NCBI GenBank assembly: GCA_001642005.1
Contig: LWCA01000299.1
Coordinates: 1-33,058 of the forward strand
DNA length: 33,058 nt
Reading direction: 5' to 3'
Origin: Intoshia linei
Taxonomy: Eukaryota; Animalia; Orthonectida
Part shown: positions 8,116 through 32,098 of the stretch, in pieces
Layout of the letters: each line of letters begins with the position of its first letter
How positions within the stretch are numbered: the first letter of the stretch is position 1
Translations under genes and position numbers: made by a program
The notes under the pieces: model-generated
Told to the model about the DNA's origin: nothing
Seen by the model: only the letters and a program-made list of their open reading frames with translations
Database searches by the model: none

Positions 8116-11100
8116 ATGAACAAATTGAACATTATTAAGATGAAAACTATAAAATCACGAAATAAACTTGATTGCAAAGGAATGAAGAGTAAATATTTAT
8201 TTTTAATTTATTCATTTTTCAAGGTATGTCTGATAGCGATAATTTAAAAATTGAACCGATAAACAAAACTTATGCCGGACTAAATAATATGATACATTTT
8301 GATGGTGATGAATTTGATGAGGATGAGATGAAAGAAATTTTAAAAAGCCGGTATGTAACTTTTTTGAATAGATTGGTGAATAAGTTATTTTTTTGATAGA
8401 TATCAACAGGATATTATGTATACATTTTTGGGAGATACATTGATTTCTATTAACCCGTATACTGAAATGAATATCTACAACGCTAGTTATGTTAAAAAGT
8501 ATAAAACGATTGACTGGACCAAAAAAAATATCAAAACTGTAGCTCACCCATTTGCAATTGCCAATAGGGTTCTCAAGCCAATCAAACATAAGGGGATTAG
8601 TCGGAACAAGTCTATTATTATTACTGGTATATTTTATGTTTCAGTCTTTATATTTATTTTTTCCATTTTAGGTGAATCTGGATCAGGTTTTAATATTTCA
8701 CTTTTTTTGTGGAATTTTATAAATTTTTTTAGGTAAAACTGAAATGACTAAAATATTGATGAAATATCTCATGCTATCAGCATCTACAAATAAACTCCAT
8801 AAAATGTATGTTTTTTTAATTAATTTTAATTTTTTTGGAACTACTACTACTGTCTACTCACTCAATTGATTTTATAAAACGTGTGTATGATGTGTGTATT
8901 ATAATTTTGAAACAGATTCAATTGAAACATTTGATTGACAATTTTTAATTTTTTAACAATTTGAAACAGAAATATGGTGTTTTGATTGTGAAAATTCAGT
9001 TTTTTGATGTTGCCATTTATGAGAATGCTTATGATTTTAAAGACCAAGATTAAATTTTTCGGCTGATTTTTTTTAAAAAAGAAAATTGCGTGTTTGACCC
9101 TGAAGTTTCAATTTGAATAACTTAAACATATATACATCGCCTGCGAAAAACTGCATTAGAAATTGTGGTTTTTAAATTCTAAGACTGTTAATTTTTTAAA
9201 TAATGGGTAACACACAGACATTCAATTTTAACATTAATTTATATCAATTCCCCCAATTTTAATAAAATACTGGAAATTCGACCCTTGTGACCTTTCTATT
9301 TTATTTTGTTTTCATGTGAAACACTTTTTCGACCTTTCAATTGTTGAGTAAAGAGTAATATATGGAATTGTAAAATTCTTATTTTTTATTTGTGTTAGTT
9401 TTTAAAATTATAATTGTAACAATAATGGCATTGTATGGGGTTCTCATAATATTCCATGAGAGGAAGATTGTTGCAACTAATTAGCTGTAGTTTAACATCT
9501 TATTATAATTTTGTAAATGTTATTGTCCGTTTGAAAAATCAGTCATTTTGCTATTTCAAGCAAAGTGAAGTACAGAAGAATGTACTTTGTATTTGGTTTA
9601 AAAAATTTTTAAATATTTGAAGGAAAAATTCAATTTTACCAACCATATAGCGAACAATTTACAGGTCAAATAGTTGAAAAATATTTTTCCGACTTCCAAT
9701 ATAATTGCAGGATGCCAATTTCTCCAAAATCTCATCGGTCTTATTTTTAGAGTGTCTAGTAAACCATTATCGTGTTATTTACATTTCTTTATTTCATATA
9801 TTCACATTTATTTACGTGAAGTAAAAAATTAATTGATAATATTAATAATTTAGAAGCAACGACATTATTAGTAGTTCAAATATGATTTTGGAAGCAATGG
9901 GAAATTCCCGTACTATAAACAATACAAATTCTAGTAGATTTGGTAAACGAATTAAAATTTTACTCGATATTAATTCCAAACCTTGCGCCATCAAAATGGA
10001 CACATTCTTATTTGAAAAATCACGCGCTTCCTCCGTCTTGTTGTCTCAAAGAAATTTTCACATATTTTATAGAGTAATTTTATAATATATTCATTAAATC
10101 AAAATTTATTAATAATAATTAATAACTTATTTATTTACATAGTTTATACATGGATGCAAAAAAATTGAATTGGAATCAATGGCATTGAAAAAAGATGTGA
10201 GAAGCTACAAAATACTAAAAACTCAATATGATTTGGAATTTGAACCGGTAATAATAATATACATACTCTTCATAATATACATGTGTACTTGTGTTAATTT
10301 CTCTCTAAATCAGCGATTTACAAGGAGTCAATATGGACCATTTGTGAATAACGGATTGTAATAGCGGGCCCACCGATAATTATTGACATTGTAAACATTG
10401 ATAATTATCAATGGCCATTTAAGCATTGTTAAATTTAACATTGTCAAACTTGGGATCACCGTGGAGAGCCATCAGTGGGTTTCATATAATTTTTTTTTAA
10501 AAATGAGACGTATATACATTACTTAATCGATCGTTTATTGCAGGGGTGGTTAACCTATGACGCATGCGCAACAAGTCGCGCATTGTGTCATTCCTGATAT
10601 TGGCTATTTTGTATAATTAAAATTTAAATTGTGGGATAATCGAAAACGAAATTTTAAATTGTAAGTAAGATTATTTTCTATAAGTAATCAGTGACGCATT
10701 TAAATCCAAATATTAAAAAACTAGCAAGGTCAAAACAACCCTAAAAGTCTCATTAATTAAGGACCACCATACAGTATATCATAATATTGTAAACAAATTA
10801 AAATGGTTTATATTTCTATAAGTATAAATTCTATTAGTAGCCGGGCTTTCACAAACATTTTTGGCGCATCTGAGATCGCGTGATAAAAATGTGACCATGG
10901 TATGTAAAAGGTTGCCCACTCTTGTTTATTGTCTAAAAATAAAAGTTGGAAATTGCAATGGCCATCATAGAAATGAAATTTTCCAACATTGATTTAAATT
11001 AAAAATTAAATTTAAATTTAAATCTCTTATAGGACGTGAGTTAACGATATATGCATAATTAGGAATCGATGTTAATTCTAGAGTTAAGATTTATTATCCA

Positions 11101-20431: not shown

Positions 20432-21482
20432 ATGTTTGAAGCTAAATTAAATGATGGATCAATATGGAAAAAATTGATAGATTCAATAAAAGATTTGTTA
20501 ACAGAGGGTATGTTGGAATGTGGCGAAAATGGAATTAGTTTGCAGGCTATGGACAGTTCCCACGTTAGTTTAGTGTCCTTTAATATGAGTTCAAATGGGT
20601 TTGATACTTATAGATGCGACCGAGAAATGTGTATGGGTGTAACTATTGCAAGGTTTTTTTAATTTTAGAAGGTTTATTAAAATTACAAATATTAGTATGG
20701 CTAAAATTCTGAAGTGTGCTAGCAATGACGATAAAATTAAACTTCAACGGGAGGAAAACAGCAATATTTTGAAATTCACTTTTGAAAATGCTAGTACTCG
20801 CCTTTATATAATAATTTCAATCTTTTTAGCTTTAGAACGAGTTTCTCATTATGAATTGAAATTGATTGATTTGGATACTGATCGATTAGCTGTCCCAGTA
20901 ATTTAAATTTTATGATTCTCAACCTTCTCACTTACTTATTGATCAAAATTATTGAAAATGTTGAGAACCACTACTTTAATCTATCAAAATTACCCTTTTA
21001 ATAGGAAACAGATTACAATTCCAGCATTAAATTACCATCCAATGAATTTACTAGAGTAATACGGGACATGGCTAGTTTAGGCGAATCAGTAATAATTGAA
21101 TGCAGTAAAGGAGAAGTCCGATTTTCCTCATCAGGGGACATTGGAAAAGGTATCTGAAATGACAAAATTTGGATTAATTAAAATTAAATTTCAATAGGTC
21201 AGACAATTTTGCGATCTACAGCTTCAACTGATGAACCTGAATCTGCCATCCTAATAAACGTATCTGAATCACTATCCATGTCATTTAATCTTAAATACAT
21301 GACAATGTTTACCAAAGGAGCAGTGTTGAGCAACAGGGTTGTTTTATCAATGTGTGTCGATGTCCCAATAGGTATGAACTTATCAACGTAGTTATATAAT
21401 AATAGTTATTGAATACGACATTGTGGATTTTGGAAAACTTTGCTACTATCTTGCACCAAAAATTGAAGATGCTGAAGAGTAA
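20432..21482 (+). CDS. PCNA: Proliferating cell nuclear antigen
   Basis: Exons 20432-20652, 20696-20793, 20830-20897, 21005-21149, 21198-21371, 21406-21482. MFEAKL, LQAMDSSHVSLV, YRCDR, SMAKILKCA, ELKLIDLD, K164-equivalent in IECSKG, YYLAPKIED. Confidence 0.98.
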
Positions 21483-21537: not shown

Positions 21538-24500
21538 TTAATAAGAAGTAGAATTTAGCAAATTTTTTTGAATTAAAACATTTTGAATGTGCATGTACAG
21601 TTTTACTTGATCTTGATCTGGCAGGTCCATAAATGATGCAATAGTATGATCCAAATGGACAAAGCTAATTTTGTTTATTAATTTAATTTGGTGTATTCTT
21701 ACTTAACTATACTCGTGTAGTAGACATATACGAATACCATCATTATAAATTGACAATCAAATCTATCTGTAACACCACCGTGTCCAGGGATAATTGCTCC
21801 AAAATCCTAAATTGATATTAATTATAATGGATAAGATTTTAAAATACACATCATGTATATCAGTGTTTTTTAAACTGGTCCTTGGGACCGCGAAATATTT
21901 TGTACTAATTATAAATCAAATTAATTTTCTGTATATTCCCGTTTATTTAAAAACTAACATTCTTAGAATTTTTAAAATACAAACTCTAACTTTTTTACTG
22001 AGTGTTTTATCATAAATGCAATTTTCAGAAATTTGTATCTTCACGGTCAAATCTCAAATTACGATTTTATTACCCAACATTTTTCAAATTATCACTGAAA
22101 AAATTTTGTATAATTAAGAGTTTTTGTTCATTTTATATAGAGAAAAAATTTCAACCTCAGAAAGTTGCATCTTACTAACCCAGTGGTTCCCAAAGTGGTC
22201 CACAAGAAAAATTTTAAATTTTCCAAAGAACCTTTGGTTCAATTTTTTTGGACTACATATTTTTTTTAAATTTTTAGAATGTAATGGGCGATTAATAATC
22301 AATGTGTGTATATTTAAAATAGAAGCACTATGTCGCAATTAAAAATATCTAATGATACTTATCCGAGTTGCGCTCATCATTTAAAATATACTTTTAAAAA
22401 TCATATAGAAAAATTTAAATGTAACTTTATTTTTTGCAAAAACAACATTGTTGTAAGTTGTCTTATTTTATGGTCTCAACATCCACGCTTAAGTTCATTA
22501 GTTCATTCAGCCTTAACTATACATTTCAATTTTTAAAATTTGATCCTAGCTCTATTTTTGTGATTTTTATAGACATTTTAAAAAAAATTTCGTCGAGATC
22601 CCTCTGTGGAAGGATCTCGCATACGGCACTGGTAGTTCGCAATAAGTATGTTTGAAATTAAGAATTTTTTTAATTACGCTATTGAAGCTACCTTGTCAAA
22701 ATTAATAAAAAATTTTCGATTTAAGGAGGAATATATAAAAAAATCAAAATATTACCTTAGTGACGTGTTCAGGTTTAAGGGATTTTTTTAAAAAAATTAT
22801 GTGGTCCACACACATTTTTCACTTTTTAAATTGAGCATTAAAATATAATTTTCCTTTTAACTATCATAACTATTTTATGTATCAAATTTAAACTGCCAAG
22901 TCTAGACTCGTGCACGACCGTGGACAGGTGATTCGGACTATATGATATTACACATCGTTTGCAAAAAATTTTTATTTTCAAATGGGCTTTGAACATGGTA
23001 GGTTCATCTGATCAATGGAACACTTTTTACTGATAATTCAAAAAGATTATATAGTGATAATTGTGAATATCACCTATTATTCTGATCATTACCTTAATTT
23101 TATATGCTCTTTTGAATCCACTTGCGAAAAATCCACCGAACGGTGCAAACAAAGATGCAAATGCTGCCAAGGGTATAGCATGTAACATGAACGGATAAGT
23201 ATCTATTGTTGAAAATCCAAATACCTACATAAATCATAATTTTTAACCAAAATTTGAATAGGATTTTAAGGACCATTTAACTAAATGGTCCATTTTTATA
23301 ATATTTATCTGAAACGTTTGATATAAAAATTACATTTTCCGTGAGTACTAATATAGTGGATGGAAGTTGATATTCTGTAACTTTGAACAGTGCAGATCGG
23401 GCTGCTTGAGAGAAAATTTCCAGTTCTGTATCATATGTAAATGAACAAACAATATAATCATATTTAATAAATAAACAACAAGCCTAAATGATTAAATATA
23501 TAATAAAATTACAAATATAACTTTCTACCAGTTGATGTAATTAGTCCCGTAATTCCGCCAGGGCCTTTTATAGAGTCTAGGGACCATAGAACGAACCACT
23601 TAAATAACGAACTAAATAAGTAGGTCATGGTACAAAAATTTCTTAATTTTTAAAAACTGACAAGCGTCATTGAATTCGATTTACATTTAATAAATTAGTC
23701 ATTATTATTACAACACATTCATCTAAAAAAGTTTGCTGGTGCCAGTAAATTTACATGCATTGTATTTGTTGGTAAATCGACCACCCTTGCTTATAATAAA
23801 TAATTATTGGTGAATTAAAGCGGATAGTGGTGAAAATTACGGATCGCAACCAAAAAAAAAAAAGATTTAATTCAAAGACTGATATTGTTGGTCTTCGAAA
23901 TTAAAATTTTTTAATACAAATAAAACTTACAATAATTGAATAGATTATTGTGAAAAAAGCCCCACCAATATATCCCTCCCATGTCTTTTTTGGAGAAATA
24001 TGAATCAGAGGTGTACGTCCAAAAAAGAAACCGCAAAAGTATGCCATACTGTCGTTACATATTATCAATGTTGTTGAAAGGGCGAACCTAAATTATAATT
24101 ACATTATTTTAATTCAAGCAAACCCATTACCATATTATACCATGTAACACATTCATAATAGCACAATGACTGGCAATAACACAAAGAACGGCAGTAATAA
24201 GTGTCCAACCAAACTGAAATTATTAAATTTATAAATAAATTAAAAAATTACCCAAACAAACTGCTTCAAATAATGAGTTTTGACAAGATTAAAAACAAAC
24301 ATAAATATTGAAATGCAAAACGAAGTAAAAGTTATCATTTTATGATATGTAATAATTGGACGAAAGAAGGTCTAAAAATTGAAAAAAATAAACAACAAAA
24401 TTAATTACCAATCGTAGCGGAATAGCAAAATGTTTAAATACAGTATCTCCCAGCATGAAAAAATTGAACCAAAAAAGAAAAAACCAACTTTGACACCTAT

Positions 24501-25926: not shown

Positions 25927-26640
25927 TATTAGACGAATCTAAATTAATTTACTAGTTCTAATCTTACGAGAATCTATATTAACACTATTCGTGTTATATA
26001 CCAATGTAGTTGTAGTTTTAAAATATAGAAATTATAATAATAAATAGCTAACTAATTTCAAATGGCACCACACCTATAGTGTTGATAAAGTAATTTATAA
26101 ATTACTTAAAATAAATGTATTAATAAAAAAGCCTGACATTTAGATTTAAAAACATTAATCTTACTTATTCATGCGTCTTTTTTCCATGTAGTAACGCACA
26201 TGTAATAATAAAATGTACGTCAATCAGATCTTTTGTGGTGTTCAAAGATAATATTTACCGTGTTATAAGATTTTACTACAGTAAACACCCGAAAAGTGAC
26301 CACTTTTTTCACCAAATTTAAAATCGTGACATCAATATAGTTACATATTCTTTAAAGGGTGTCTACTTAAATTCAACCATTTTTACTAAAAATCAAAATT
26401 TACCAGCACTAAAAGGAAAAATATAGTTTTATCAACCCTAAAATGAAAATTTTAGTTTTACCAACCTTTAAGAGAAAAATCCAATTTATTTATCAAATTT
26501 TGCATGAAAATTGTTAAAACAAGAATACAGTATATCTCTGAAATTGAATTAATATCAAAATCTTACAAGAAGACAAAAATACATTTTTTTAAATATTTAT
26601 TGATAAACTAAACAATTTATTTTAGCATGATGATAATGTT

Positions 26641-29600
26641 CTAATGTACAGATTCTCGGAAATAATTTCCTAAATAATCAACACTATTTTTTTTGGGATT
26701 ATATTCTACAACAAACTCTTCGTCATACAATGGCCTATGAGCATGATGATGTGGCATCGTATCAATCATATGAATTTGAGGAATATGAATAAATTTTTGA
26801 TATTCCAATAAATCATTTCTGTACTTGGTCAAATATTTATTTTTGTAATAAATGTGCGGATGATTATGTTGCACATAACGTTGTGCCATCAAATTGTGAT
26901 CAATATTGTGGTGGTCAATCATGTGATTGTGTAGCAAATCATTGTGAACATTATGATAATTGTGTATATTGTAGTCATCGTATAATATATTATTGTGATG
27001 ATTGAACCAATCATTATGTAATATGTTCAAATTGTCATCATAAGTGTCGTAATAATGATCCAAAGCATAATGTTGCATATCACGATTATAGTCATTGTAA
27101 TGATTATCATAATAATGGTCTGTATCTGAAAAGGATTCGTCGTGTGTTAATTGTGGAGTGTAGAAAACATTATTCATTCTGTAGGCGGAAGGGTTGTGAA
27201 AATAATCATTATGGCTGTCATAACCTTGATATCCAAAATGTTGATGTGGTTCATAAATATAACCACTAAAATTATCTGGGTGGTTGTAATTTACAGAATT
27301 ATGATACGGGTGAACATGACGTGAACTATGAGGATAAAAATGATTCTTATCATGAATTTGATCATAATTGTACAAATTTGTATCGTGTACGTGAGGGTGT
27401 ATATCATGGGGATTAGAATAATCGTAATGATTCAGTCTGTTGTGATACTCTGAATGATCGTGATCGTTGTGCATGTGTGGACCATGATAATCATGAATAT
27501 GGTCATGATGATTATGGTTTCGATGACCGTGAGCGTTTCCATTATGATGATTTAAATGGCCACTATAATCGTGAATATCTTGATGGTAATTATTACCGTT
27601 TACTTGCCCGTGAATGTTTCCATGACGATGATCTGAATGGTCATGATAATCGGGAATATCTTGATGGTGAGTATTATGGTGGCTATGAGCGTGTCTGTTT
27701 CCATTATTATGATTTGAATGGTCATGATAATCGAAGTGGCTAAACACGTGTGGAACATGATAATCGTGACTGTTTTTATGGTGATTATTATATTTTCGAT
27801 GATCATGGAAATGCACATCACTTCCGCTAACTGGAATGTGTTTATGGCCATCACTACCAATGTGATTGGCGTGATTATTCCTATATCTATGTAAATTACT
27901 ACTCATGTGTCCTTTATTATGATAGCCAAGTCTATGAATCCCATGATGATCCACGCGATCATTGTGATTATAATGATGCAGGGTATCCTTTATTGGTTCT
28001 TCAGAGTACGAACGAGTATTATGATAATTGTAGTCATTATTTGGTTGATCTGAAAATGCAAGTACATGATTTTCATCATAATGGATGTGACTATTTTTAG
28101 AATCTCCTTCGTTCTTAGAATAAAATCCCGTAGAGTGAGTAGGGTTGTCGACATATCCAAAATTGTAAGGTTCGGGTTCAATAATTCTTCTGAAATATGC
28201 ATTATTATCGTTATTGTGTAAATTTCTAGGGTGGTGTATCCTATTATTATGAACAAATTTATCTGTAGCATCATGGTTTTCGGGCGTTTCATCTATAGTT
28301 TTATTATCACTGGTTTCAGTCTTTGAAATTTTATCATCCAATAACGATTCTCGGTGTATTGCTAAATATAAAATTAAATTAATCATGACAATTCATTAAT
28401 CAACAGAGCTTTGTGAATGTTTACTGACCTCCAATAAGGAATGCTGGCAGCTACCTAACCTATTGTAAACGAGACCTCTCCTCGGGAATAGTGGCTTTAT
28501 TTTTCCAAATTTAAAATTTATATTTTTCAACATCTTTACTGTTTTATGCGACAAATTTAATCTGGTCCTAGGCCCGTGGAGAGATGATTAGGGCTGTACG
28601 ACACACGCATCGTTTTTGAAAATTTTAGGGGTATCTTTTATTTTTAGATATGGTGGGTTTGTTGTCTGCGTTGACCCTAGAGTTAATATATACCAAGGTA
28701 TATTTCACGACATTCCCTGTAAGATAAAATGGTTCAAAAAATTAAAAAAAATAGGATTTGCGAAAAATACGATGTAATTTATTGAATTATTGAATTTATT
28801 TGCGCTAGTGCATAAAGTGCTAGGCCGTTACGGGAGTCGAAAATTTTTTATAAATTATTTGATTATTTTATTATTTGTTTATTTTTACTTTTTTGTGAGG
28901 TATAAATTTAATGAAATTAAGGAAGAATTCTTATTTTAAAGAGAACTACTTACAAATACAAAAAAATTGAAAAAATTTATAGAAAAGAAAGTATTTATTG
29001 AAAAAAATTTAAATTGGAACAATATATGCGGTGTTTGTATTGATGCAGCACCAGCTTTGCTTGGATCAAAATCTGGGTTTCAGGTAAAAATAACAGAAAA
29101 AGTTCCTGATGTCAAAGGGCAAATTTCTCATTAATTTAAAGTAATTTCATATTTTTAATTAATAGAAATAATTTTTTTAAGGTTCAAAATGATTAAAATG
29201 ATTAAAAGTATAATATTTTGTATAATGCATAATAAATTTATTTTAATCTCATTCGAAAATTTTTTTATAATACATGAAATGATCAATGGAATTAAGTAAA
29301 GTTAATATTTTAGATATAAAAAAATTTAGTTTGTTCGTAATAAAGGGAGAGGTCTCGAGGTATAAAAGGTTGAGAACCACTGAGCTAGTGGAATATGAAT
29401 ATTATCTAATATAAATTTAGTATACAAAATATGAATCTGATCTTGAAAGACGTATTATTTTTTAACCTTCTTAGACACTGGTTCTCGATTGGGAGCACAA
29501 AACTACATGCCTGGGTCCGTGAGATTTAAATAGAATATTGAAAAAATTTTTATCAACTTTTATTTATTTTCATAGGAGAATTTTTAATATTTATTACATA

Positions 29601-31329
29601 CATGTAATTGCCAGAGGTTAGAAATTTATCTTAAAGCCTAGACGACCGCTACATTATTATTTCAAAAATCCCACTTTTATCCACCATTAATAAAATTTAC
29701 ATGTTAATAAAAAATACAATTTCAAACCCCAGAGAACAATCGACTTTTACTGATATTTTTTTGAAAAATCTACTCAATCAAACCACAAAATAAAAATACA
29801 ATTTTACCAAAGATTAAAGGAATTCTCCTCTTTTTCCAATATTTTTTTGAATTCTAATTCGAATTCGAACTTCCTAATTCAAAAACAAAAATAAAAAATC
29901 GCCTTATTCTAATATTTTTTAGAAAAACACGATTTTACCAATCTTATGAGAAAACCCTTTAATTTTTTCATGAATATTTTATATTTCATGTTTCCTTTGG
30001 GATAAAAAAAAAATATTTTGAAACGAGGTCCGTACACTATTTGAATCGGGGACCACTGCTCTAAGGTGTCGTGTACTATGAGTTATATACTACTTTCTTA
30101 GAAAAGAGTTTTTATTATTCAAAAAAAAATTTAAATTTCCGATTTTAGCGAATAGTGGAGAATTGAGTGTTTTGGAAAAAATAAAACTTGAAATTAAATC
30201 ATCCCAGTAAATTTTTCAAATATACACAGTAGTGACAGCTCAATTTGAAACCTCTGGTTTAACATAATTTCATAACAAAAAATTTAAAAAAATCAGCCAA
30301 ATATTTTTAAATTTTCTCAATTACTGTGATAAATATCCCGATATTGGACTAACCATTAATTTGAATTTCCCTATGTAAATCTTTCTCTTTGTACAGTACA
30401 AAAACTCTACAAACACTGCAATGCATTGATTATAATTATAATTATTATCAACTTATAAATAAAATATTACATCTTTTATTCCTTAAAGATTGAGATTCTA
30501 AATAGAAAAATTACAAAAGTAATCAAAAAAACATTTACCACAACTTCCAAAATTAACAGTTAAATTTGAAATGGCAATAATATTTCCATTGGTAATAAAC
30601 CCTGTAAAAGAAATCTAAATAAAATTAAAAAAATTCAATAAAAACATAATGTTAATTACATTCTGGATAAATTGATCGTACGTGCTAATTTTTGCATTTT
30701 TCCAGGAATCTGAATCATCTGATGAAGTTTCAGAATCCCAATTTTTGAATTGATTATTTCCGAATCCCAAAGTTAGTAAATTTTCTCTTCCATTGGTAAC
30801 ATAATCAAAGGATATGCATGTGTTTTGAGTAAGAGATTCATTATTTATTTGAAATAAAAGTCTAAAACAAATTGTATTTATTCAAATATTAACTATTATT
30901 AGTAAAGTCACCATCAGAATCAATTTCCACCAACCCAACAAAAACACAACATGTCACGAGAAAGAATATAAATCCTTACTTACATTACTGTATATAAAAA
31001 ACATTTATCAAAATCTAAAAGAAGAACCCATTATAATTTTTTAATTATGCAGTAACATTTAAACATTTAATTATGCAGTATATTTACTTATTATTAATAA
31101 TATATTGAAAATTTACTGAGATCTCGCTGTATCAACGTATGCATAGTTGGTTCTACCGTTAATTTCTTTACCTTGTGAAATTTTCCAAAAATCAGTTTTT
31201 GAATCACACAATGTCTCGAAATTGCATACAAAAAGATCTAAAATTAGGATTAGCATTTTGATTTAAATTTGAACCGTTCGCTTTGGTTGTAATGATGAAA
31301 ATAACGATTGAAAAAATAATTAATTTCAT
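26641..31329 (-). CDS. Secreted proprotein: signal peptide + MAM-like domain + furin site + His/Asn/Asp/Tyr-rich tail (~733 aa)
   Basis: Exons 31329-31275, 31237-31117, 30861-30660, 30614-30539, 30497-30471, 28361-26641. All introns are GT-AG, phases are consistent, total 2202 nt. Protein: MKLIIFSIVIFIITTKA-NDLFVCNFETLC...FWK...YAYVDT...CISFDY...WKNAKI...IIAISNLTVNFGSC-ESQSLRNKR-SIHRES...; AATAAA on the minus strand at 26596-26601 and 26616-26621. Confidence 0.82.
27490..27735 (-). repeat. Coding tandem repeat, ~81 bp / 27 aa x3
   Basis: DYHDHSNHNNGNRHAHSHHNTHHQDIP / DYHDHSDHRHGNIHGQVNGNNYHQDIH / DYSGHLNHHNGNAHGHRNHNHHDHIH / DYH. Confidence 0.85.
28811..29382 (+). mobile_element. Internally deleted Buster-type hAT element with transposase fragment
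   Basis: Right TIR aaggttgagaaccactg; TSD cgctagtg (28803-28810) / agctagtg (29383-29390). Region ~28892-29120 translates FVRYKFNEIKEEFLF*REL... and EKNLNWNNICGVCIDAAPALLGSKSGFQVKITEKVP, the Buster/ZBED5/SCAND3-type W..C.GVCTDGAPAM.G...GF motif. Confidence 0.85.
29476..30058 (+). mobile_element. hAT MITE family A, 583-bp copy
   Basis: Ends cactggttctcgattggg / aatcggggaccactg; extensive colinear similarity with 1695-2106 (gaccgctacatt.ttatttcaaaaa.cc, tcgactttta.tgatattttttgaaaaa); TSD degraded. Confidence 0.85.
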
Positions 31330-32098
31330 GTTTTGTGATACTTTATGTATGTTTAAACTTTAAAGTGTTGATAAATCAGTATCAAAATATTATCATAAAT
31401 ACTCTATTGTTATCTGATTAAAGATGACTAGTTGATTTAGAAATTTATTTTAAATATTTAGATTCTTTCAAACAAGCAACAATTGTGTTTTCGTAATTGA
31501 ATAATTAATATTCATGTCAAGTTTTAATATAATACACCTGAAATTATAATTAATCTTTTTAGTTAATTTGTCGATGGAATATAACTAGCTATTTCGTTTT
31601 ATTTTGTAGTGTACTATTTCATTAAGTGTATTCATGATTAATTAATTTAAATAAAAATGTCAATTCCCTTTGTCACATAATACATTGTTAATTTTTATAA
31701 GAGGATTAAATAAAATTTATTTCATTAACACATGTAAATATTTAGCCATTTTTATTTCCAATAATATTTACTACATATTCTAGTGATACAATGTATTTAT
31801 TGGATTTTCCAGACTACATGTTTATTTCTAATTATAATATAGTGATCGTTCTCAAAAATGGCCACTCATGGGAGGGGTTTTCAGGTAATGACATTACTTT
31901 ATTAAATACATTGTATTGTGATTAATGATTTTATGAAAGATGAACATGAGATTAAAGAGTTTATCTTTTGACAGGTAAAGTATCCTTTACTTATCTAAAA
32001 TGGAATGTATGTGTGTATGTTACCGTATATTTAAAATATTCACAGTCGTAGAATTTAAAAACACCCAATTTTTAATAATTTTTCCCAGGACGTGTTTA

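Follow-up and report, generated by a model that had tools for sequence, protein, structure and literature searches.

A locus of the orthonectid Intoshia linei raises the question of whether a series of small exons and a long histidine-rich open reading frame (ORF) belong to one gene and, if so, what kind of protein this gene encodes. The locus spans positions 31329 to 26641 on the minus strand of contig LWCA01000299.1 (assembly GCA_001642005.1), a stretch of 33,058 nucleotides that was analyzed over its full length and is referred to here as the window. In the original prediction, five small minus-strand exons absent from the ORF track were proposed to splice in frame to the large His-rich ORF, yielding a secreted proprotein with a MAM-type domain and a furin site ahead of the tail. 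Our analysis indicates that this is very probably a single spliced gene, in which exons 1 to 5 are joined to exon 6. The case is built on an architecture kept in four paralogues, fitting intron phases, public gene models, and evidence that the exon 6 splice acceptor is used.

The six-exon model was read by eye and checked by script, and the predicted coordinates and in-frame splicing were confirmed. All introns begin with GT and end with AG, the intron phases are 1, 2, 0, 1, and 1 in order, and the junction between exons 5 and 6 falls at 30471/28361, as predicted. The introns measure 37, 255, 45, 41, and 2109 nt. Together, the exons contain 2202 coding nt, equal to 733 codons plus the stop. 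The features of the gene are as follows.

31275 to 31329, minus strand: exon 1, 55 nt (18 codons plus 1 nt), with the start codon and the predicted signal peptide; missing from the GenBank model.
31238 to 31274, minus strand: intron 1, 37 nt, containing the start codon of the GenBank model (31256-31254).
31117 to 31237, minus strand: exon 2, 121 nt, start of the MAM-like domain (CNFE..C, W, YAYVD) with Cys 1 and 2.
30660 to 30861, minus strand: exon 3, 202 nt, middle of the MAM-like domain (C.SFDY with Cys 3, conserved Trp residues).
30539 to 30614, minus strand: exon 4, 76 nt, final strands of the MAM-like domain (IAISNL..G.C) with Cys 4.
30471 to 30497, minus strand: exon 5, a 27-nt micro-exon encoding a linker that ends in RNKR (codons 30483-30472).
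28362 to 30470, minus strand: intron 5, 2109 nt, with multicopy dispersed repeats at approximately 29480-30160.
26641 to 28361, minus strand: exon 6, His/Asn/Asp/Tyr-rich tail of 572 aa in frame from 28359; stop codon TAG at 26643-26641.
27508 to 27750, minus strand: tandem repeat within the tail, three copies of an 81-nt (27-aa) unit.
26644 to 27093, minus strand: conserved C-terminal module of approximately 150 aa, with a core at 26644-26955 (HNDLLHNH, IH.P, YDEE, VD.LGNY).
26596 to 26621, minus strand: two AATAAA polyadenylation-type signals, 20 to 45 nt past the stop.

A protein search with the exon 6 translation retrieved the public protein A3Q56_02944 (P0001, 721 aa), labeled "hypothetical protein" in GenBank and "MAM domain-containing protein" in UniRef. 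Spliced together, exons 2 to 6 reproduce this protein letter for letter. The gene is therefore public but uncharacterized: it was not hidden, since GenBank annotates all of it but exon 1. Analyses of the complete protein were made on P0001, and paralogue B (see below) was handled as separate exon pieces. Because the annotated start codon (ATG 31256) lies within intron 1, the public protein lacks exon 1 and its signal peptide. Only about nine residues precede the first domain Cys in A3Q56_02944, too short a stretch for a signal peptide. The public gene model is corrected here by an additional exon for the signal peptide.

The search for paralogues that had been suggested was carried out in the organism's own genome and points to a four-member family, confined to Intoshia as far as public data show. 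The gene described above is paralogue A (contig C1721). Paralogue B (C2317, locus L006) agrees with A in its six exons and their phases; its exon 5 is 27 nt long, and its tail carries a (GHHGHN)n array. In paralogue C (C1518, L007; protein P0003, 513 aa), exons 1 to 4 follow the same layout. Paralogue D (L025; protein P0002) shares the six-exon layout and phases, with a 24-nt exon 5; it lies at the end of C2183 and is cut off by the contig end, and the His-rich ORF on C952 (L012) probably represents its 3′ part. No MAM exons were found in the 3.9 kb upstream of the latter ORF, up to the contig end. Exon 2 is 45 to 50% identical to its counterparts in the paralogues. The recurrence of the exon layout speaks against a chance arrangement. 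An exhaustive phmmer search with P0001 against 1.84 billion representative proteins returned only P0002 and P0003 (E values of 2e-12 and 2e-11), which match through the head. When the tail or residues 1 to 150 served as query in word-indexed protein searches, the protein itself was the sole match, and none of the protein searches returned a public protein for paralogue B. As for C952, two element copies of approximately 150 to 190 nt with near-identical ORF translations (L012 3946-4134 and 5808-5963) flank the His-rich ORF, and a single N occurs at L012 5773.

The signal peptide that had been placed on exon 1 is supported by the same layout in three paralogues. Its product has the n-h-c form of a signal, with MK, an 11-residue hydrophobic core, and TKA ahead of the likely cleavage point. 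Paralogues B, C, and D each have a signal-peptide exon of 52 to 67 nt in phase 1, followed by an intron of 38 to 72 nt and an exon with CxF..C, and the annotated proteins P0002 and P0003 include the signal peptide. Short introns are usual in I. linei, with a median of 57 bp (PMC6543705). A caveat on exon 1 is the unusual form of its donor, GTTCAA. With exon 1 included, the product of A3Q56_02944 is probably secreted, judging from the encoded sequence and its paralogues.

Transcript-like data covering the window were found in two runs only (X1 and X2), which are contig sets of uncertain kind from one study. Their contigs cover approximately 87% of exon 6, compared to approximately 17% of the intron and upstream sequence outside the repeats; their depth peaks at the 3′ end, and they reach position 26455. 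This pattern looks like RNA that includes some unspliced molecules. In each run, one contig ends exactly at 28361. The X1 contig ending there shares 30 nt, equal to k − 1, with a contig that reads into the intron (28332-28448). This overlap marks a branch at the predicted acceptor, the signature expected where spliced and unspliced forms diverge.

The compact four-Cys domain that had been read as a MAM domain is a divergent MAM-type domain by its predicted fold and its cysteines, although the Pfam check with PF00629 was negative. AlphaFold2 (AF2) run on the single sequence gave an unusable model, with a predicted local distance difference test score (pLDDT) of 33. A second model, based on an alignment of family members that included no canonical MAM sequences, has residues 5 to 165 at a pLDDT of 60 to 91 and consists of a sandwich of 9 or 10 strands. 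This predicted beta-sandwich jelly roll is superposable on solved MAM domains: Foldseek ranks the MAM domain of Limulus LAST-MAM first, ahead of enteropeptidase, neuropilin-1, and meprin. Independently of this model, residues 1 to 150 fall among MAM clusters in the ESM Atlas, with 24 of 30 feature matches being MAM (score of 0.94, 182 shared features), and the atlas's own model aligns to the MAM domains of nephronectin and MDGA1 with a template modeling (TM) score of 0.77. In addition, C11, C17, C62, and C139 (P0001 numbering) are invariant in P0001, P0002, and P0003 and present in paralogue B. They form the four-Cys MAM pattern (C..FE...C ... C.sF.Y ... G.C), and the MAM motif order is kept in the family. 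The head probably holds two disulfides. Sequence profiles make no such connection. PF00629 matches seven other loci in the Intoshia genome, none of them in the four-paralogue family. The family profile gave no match to PDB sequences at an E value of ≤10, and the family N-terminus had no significant hmmsearch match among four canonical MAM domains from Intoshia. The UniRef name of P0001 points to a match in a different profile library.

Directly past this domain lies the RNKR motif (residues 145 to 148 of P0001), found at the end of its own 27-nt exon as originally described. A convertase is predicted to cut between R148 and S149, after which the tail would start with SIHRESLL. In the AF2 model based on the family alignment, the linker is a helix protruding from the domain (residues 139 to 166). 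At the same position, paralogue D encodes KHKR-S, paralogue B encodes GKR-L, and paralogue C encodes RKK, with KSKR further downstream. The head and tail layout recurs in the paralogues, whereas the strict RxKR motif does not; a K/R pair at most 11 residues past the last Cys recurs in A, B, and D. Genes for furin/kexin-type convertases are present in the genome: subtilase (S8) catalytic and P domains occur together on contigs C3070 (9929-12647, plus strand) and C65 (26111-30317, minus strand), and a third P-domain locus lies on contig C2278. Furin-type cleavage after RNKR is plausible on these sequence grounds.

The tail (26644-28359, minus strand) contains exactly the number of His that had been counted by hand. 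Its 572 aa include 107 His (18.7%), 13.8% Asn, 10.3% Asp, 9.4% Tyr, 3.7% Gly, and no Cys. The AF2 pLDDT of approximately 27 over residues 168 to 560 is consistent with disorder, and the predicted disordered region comprises some 420 aa, roughly half of them His, Asn, Asp, or Tyr. The calculated net charge of the tail is +58 at pH 5.5, approximately +5 at pH 6.5, −19 at pH 7, and −36 at pH 8.1, with a change of sign near pH 6.5. Across all four paralogue tails, His accounts for 19 to 28% of the residues, and the central parts barely align. The GC content of the exon (33 to 41%) exceeds that of its surroundings (26%), and His codons start with C, which argues that His has been kept against the mutational bias. 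The strand opposite the tail reads as long Ile/Met/Val-rich pseudo-ORFs, which are caused by the NAY codons of the sense strand. In paralogue B, the (GHHGHN)n array lies at approximately 5900-6500 of L006; with 28% His and 10.7% Gly, this is by composition the most Nvjp-1-like member of the family.

The original prediction overlooked the GenBank entry, the four-member family, and a conserved module at the end of the tail. The last 105 to 150 residues are 38 to 44% identical to those of paralogues B and D (E values of 4e-14 and 6e-12). They are non-repetitive and contain 42 invariant columns, including the motifs listed above. The module occurs in three paralogues and is lacking in paralogue C. 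It is modeled as helices, at a pLDDT of only 50 to 58, and a search of the ESM Atlas with residues 560 to 721 gave no usable match and no relatives by features or fold. Taken together, the architecture, consisting of a MAM-type head, a basic micro-exon, a His-rich disordered region, and a conserved C-terminal module, matches no characterized family. This agrees with the original prediction, in which it was not recognized: the exhaustive protein search and a literature search found no such family, and the literature contained nothing relevant on "histidine-rich" combined with "MAM domain" or on orthonectids combined with histidine.

We favor, with moderate confidence, a reading of the whole in which a secreted MAM head and a cut linker accompany a pH- or metal-responsive tail that forms extracellular material. 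The protein would enter the secretory pathway, where the MAM-type head would fold with two disulfides and the tail, strongly cationic by calculation (+58 at pH 5.5), would remain soluble in the acidic late compartments. A furin/kexin-type convertase would cut after RNKR and separate head and tail. Outside the cell, at neutral to seawater pH, the imidazoles would deprotonate (calculated net charge of −19 to −36), and His, together with Asp, could coordinate Zn, Cu, or Ni or self-associate, such that the tail condenses or is cross-linked into a material whose specific assembly the C-terminal module may provide. The material and metal part taken alone, which is drawn by analogy, is put forward more tentatively. 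A search of the genome for tyrosinase (PF00264), relevant to the idea of quinone tanning, gave no match, but the controls were also unmatched and the result is uninformative. In its most specific form, which we regard as rather unlikely, the proposal would be that four genes private to orthonectids encode His-rich polymers processed by a convertase, delivered by the MAM-type head and assembled through the C-terminal module into a Zn/Cu-cross-linked or pH-switched coat, such as a cuticle or plasmodium envelope. If true, such a coat would add a new type of protein material that converges on the chemistry of annelid jaws and mussel byssus. A metal- or pH-responsive tail would also represent a new, simple design for metal-coordinated biomaterials, based on His, Asn, Asp, and Tyr and nearly free of Gly, and its combination with a MAM domain would be without a known precedent among proteins. 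The orthonectid gene set is among the most reduced of animals. Against this background, a lineage-specific secreted family of four copies probably serves the plasmodium in host tissue or the short-lived free-swimming adults.

Several observations weigh against the favored reading. No X1 or X2 contig lies on exons 1 to 5, and no joint between exons 5 and 6 is listed. At an E value of ≤10, Pfam gave no match for P0001, whole or exon by exon, and at ≤0.01 it gave nothing for P0002 and P0003. When aligned with hhalign, the family N-terminus is co-linear with the four canonical Intoshia MAM domains, at a probability of 1.6%, and generic jelly rolls (CBM29, cleaved adhesin, and reelin) score just 1 to 2 Z units below MAM domains in the fold comparison. 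Among the four paralogues, the strict R-X-K/R-R motif is limited to this copy. His, Asn, Asp, and Tyr are all encoded by NAY codons and make up 52 to 59% of the four tails (52% in this copy), which suggests that slippage of NAY codon repeats helped build them. In terms of composition, the tail has 3.7% Gly, in contrast to approximately 29 to 35% in nereid jaw proteins, with Asn as filler in place of Gly. Moreover, we know of no jaws or other hard parts in orthonectids.

One alternative is a protein that is secreted but uncleaved, in which the MAM-like head does the adhesion or oligomerization, as in meprins and RPTPmu, the His region serves as a disordered spacer that evolves quickly, and the basic motif is coincidental. 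MAM domains are established as modules with these functions, one of the four paralogues has the strict motif, and the linker helix is modeled as continuing straight from the domain. However, the K/R pair near the last Cys is found in A, B, and D on or beside the conserved micro-exon, convertases are present in the genome, and His is high in all four tails despite the AT bias. We consider this explanation unlikely.

A different role for the tail would be that of a soluble chelator at the host-parasite interface, where it would bind Zn, Cu, Ni, or heme taken from or withheld from the nemertean host, in the manner of Plasmodium HRP2 or the histidine-rich glycoprotein (HRG) of vertebrates. The secretion signal and the high His and Asp content are in line with such a role, as is the trophic stage, a plasmodium inside host tissue (PMC6543705). 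Nevertheless, the exhaustive phmmer search detected no sequence similarity to HRP2 or HRG, and simple chelation leaves the conserved C-terminal module unexplained, which makes this alternative decidedly unlikely.

The composition of the tail could also be mostly the product of NAY-repeat slippage and expansion in an AT-rich genome, with His unselected and only the head and the C-terminal module functional. The share of NAY residues, the tandem 81-nt units, and the hardly alignable central tails all agree with this idea. Yet AT pressure should favor Asn, Tyr, Lys, and Ile, whereas His outnumbers every other residue in all four copies; in addition, the exon is GC-richer than its surroundings and its frame stays open for 572 codons. 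We therefore regard slippage as an improbable full explanation.

Finally, it is highly improbable that the locus is transcribed as two separate units, with exons 1 to 5 encoding a small secreted MAM protein and an in-frame ATG at 28386 in intron 5 opening a 581-aa His-rich ORF. In favor of this reading, contigs cover exon 6 and continue across the acceptor into intron sequence (28332-28448 and 28436-28599), and none lies on exons 1 to 5. Against it, the His-rich exon is preceded in A, B, C, and D by head exons that share its strand and match it in phase; this ATG is not kept in paralogue B; contigs of both runs break exactly at 28361; the exon 5 frame runs open up to the donor; and the genome authors' models fuse the two parts in three paralogues.

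Beyond this gene, the window is AT-rich (approximately 26% GC), and the neighbors of the His-rich gene are ordinary animal housekeeping genes, with the following Pfam matches.

20432 to 21400, plus strand: PCNA (PF00705, E value of 1e-30).
23000 to 24100, minus strand: CDP-diacylglycerol synthase type cytidylyltransferase (PF01148, E value of 4e-20).
8416 to 8736, plus strand: myosin head (PF00063).

Multicopy dispersed repeats occur at 29480-30160, in intron 5, and at 26400-26570, immediately beyond the 3′ end of the gene. Joints between contigs connect 26487 with 29828/29830, which indicates that both places carry the same repeat family. The contig depth rises to 423 on the repeats, compared to approximately 5 to 18 on the exon. 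An Rfam search of 26000-31600 returned nothing.

How does this protein compare to known systems? The secreted His-rich proteins HRP2 of Plasmodium falciparum, which also has an AT-rich parasite genome, and HRG of plasma bind heme and Zn. HRP2 consists of a regular Ala-His-His repeat, HRG contains cystatin domains, and neither is related to the family in sequence or domains. Compared to the MAM domains of meprin alpha and beta, LAST-MAM, neuropilin-1, RPTPmu/PTPRK, and enteropeptidase, which comprise 160 to 170 aa, the domain described here is shorter (approximately 130 aa). It stands as a single domain right after the signal peptide instead of being embedded in a protease, receptor, or adhesion molecule, and it is followed by a His-rich disordered tail, which we found on no characterized MAM protein. 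As in proproteins processed by furin or kexin, R-X-K-R stands right after a folded domain and the genome encodes convertases, but the motif is only partly kept in the paralogues. To our knowledge, there is no precedent for a MAM domain as a pro-region, and the pro-domain role proposed in the original prediction finds no support here, nor does any specific structural, adhesive, or metal role.

The favored reading likens the tail to the annelid jaw protein Nvjp-1 and to mussel byssal His-rich domains, without homology. Orthonectids have been placed near annelids (PMC6543705). Nvjp-1 contains >25 mol% His and approximately 35 mol% Gly (PMC9465683), values that the tail, with 18.7% His and 3.7% Gly, does not reach, and the exhaustive phmmer search showed no sequence similarity between them. 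The nereid jaw proteins also lack a MAM head, a convertase motif, and a conserved C-terminal module. They are soluble when their His is protonated and coordinate Zn when it is not (PMC9465683, PMC13120676). Like Nvjp-1 and Nai11527 from nereid jaws, the tail is predicted to be secreted and disordered, and it is rich in His, Tyr, and Asp/Glu.

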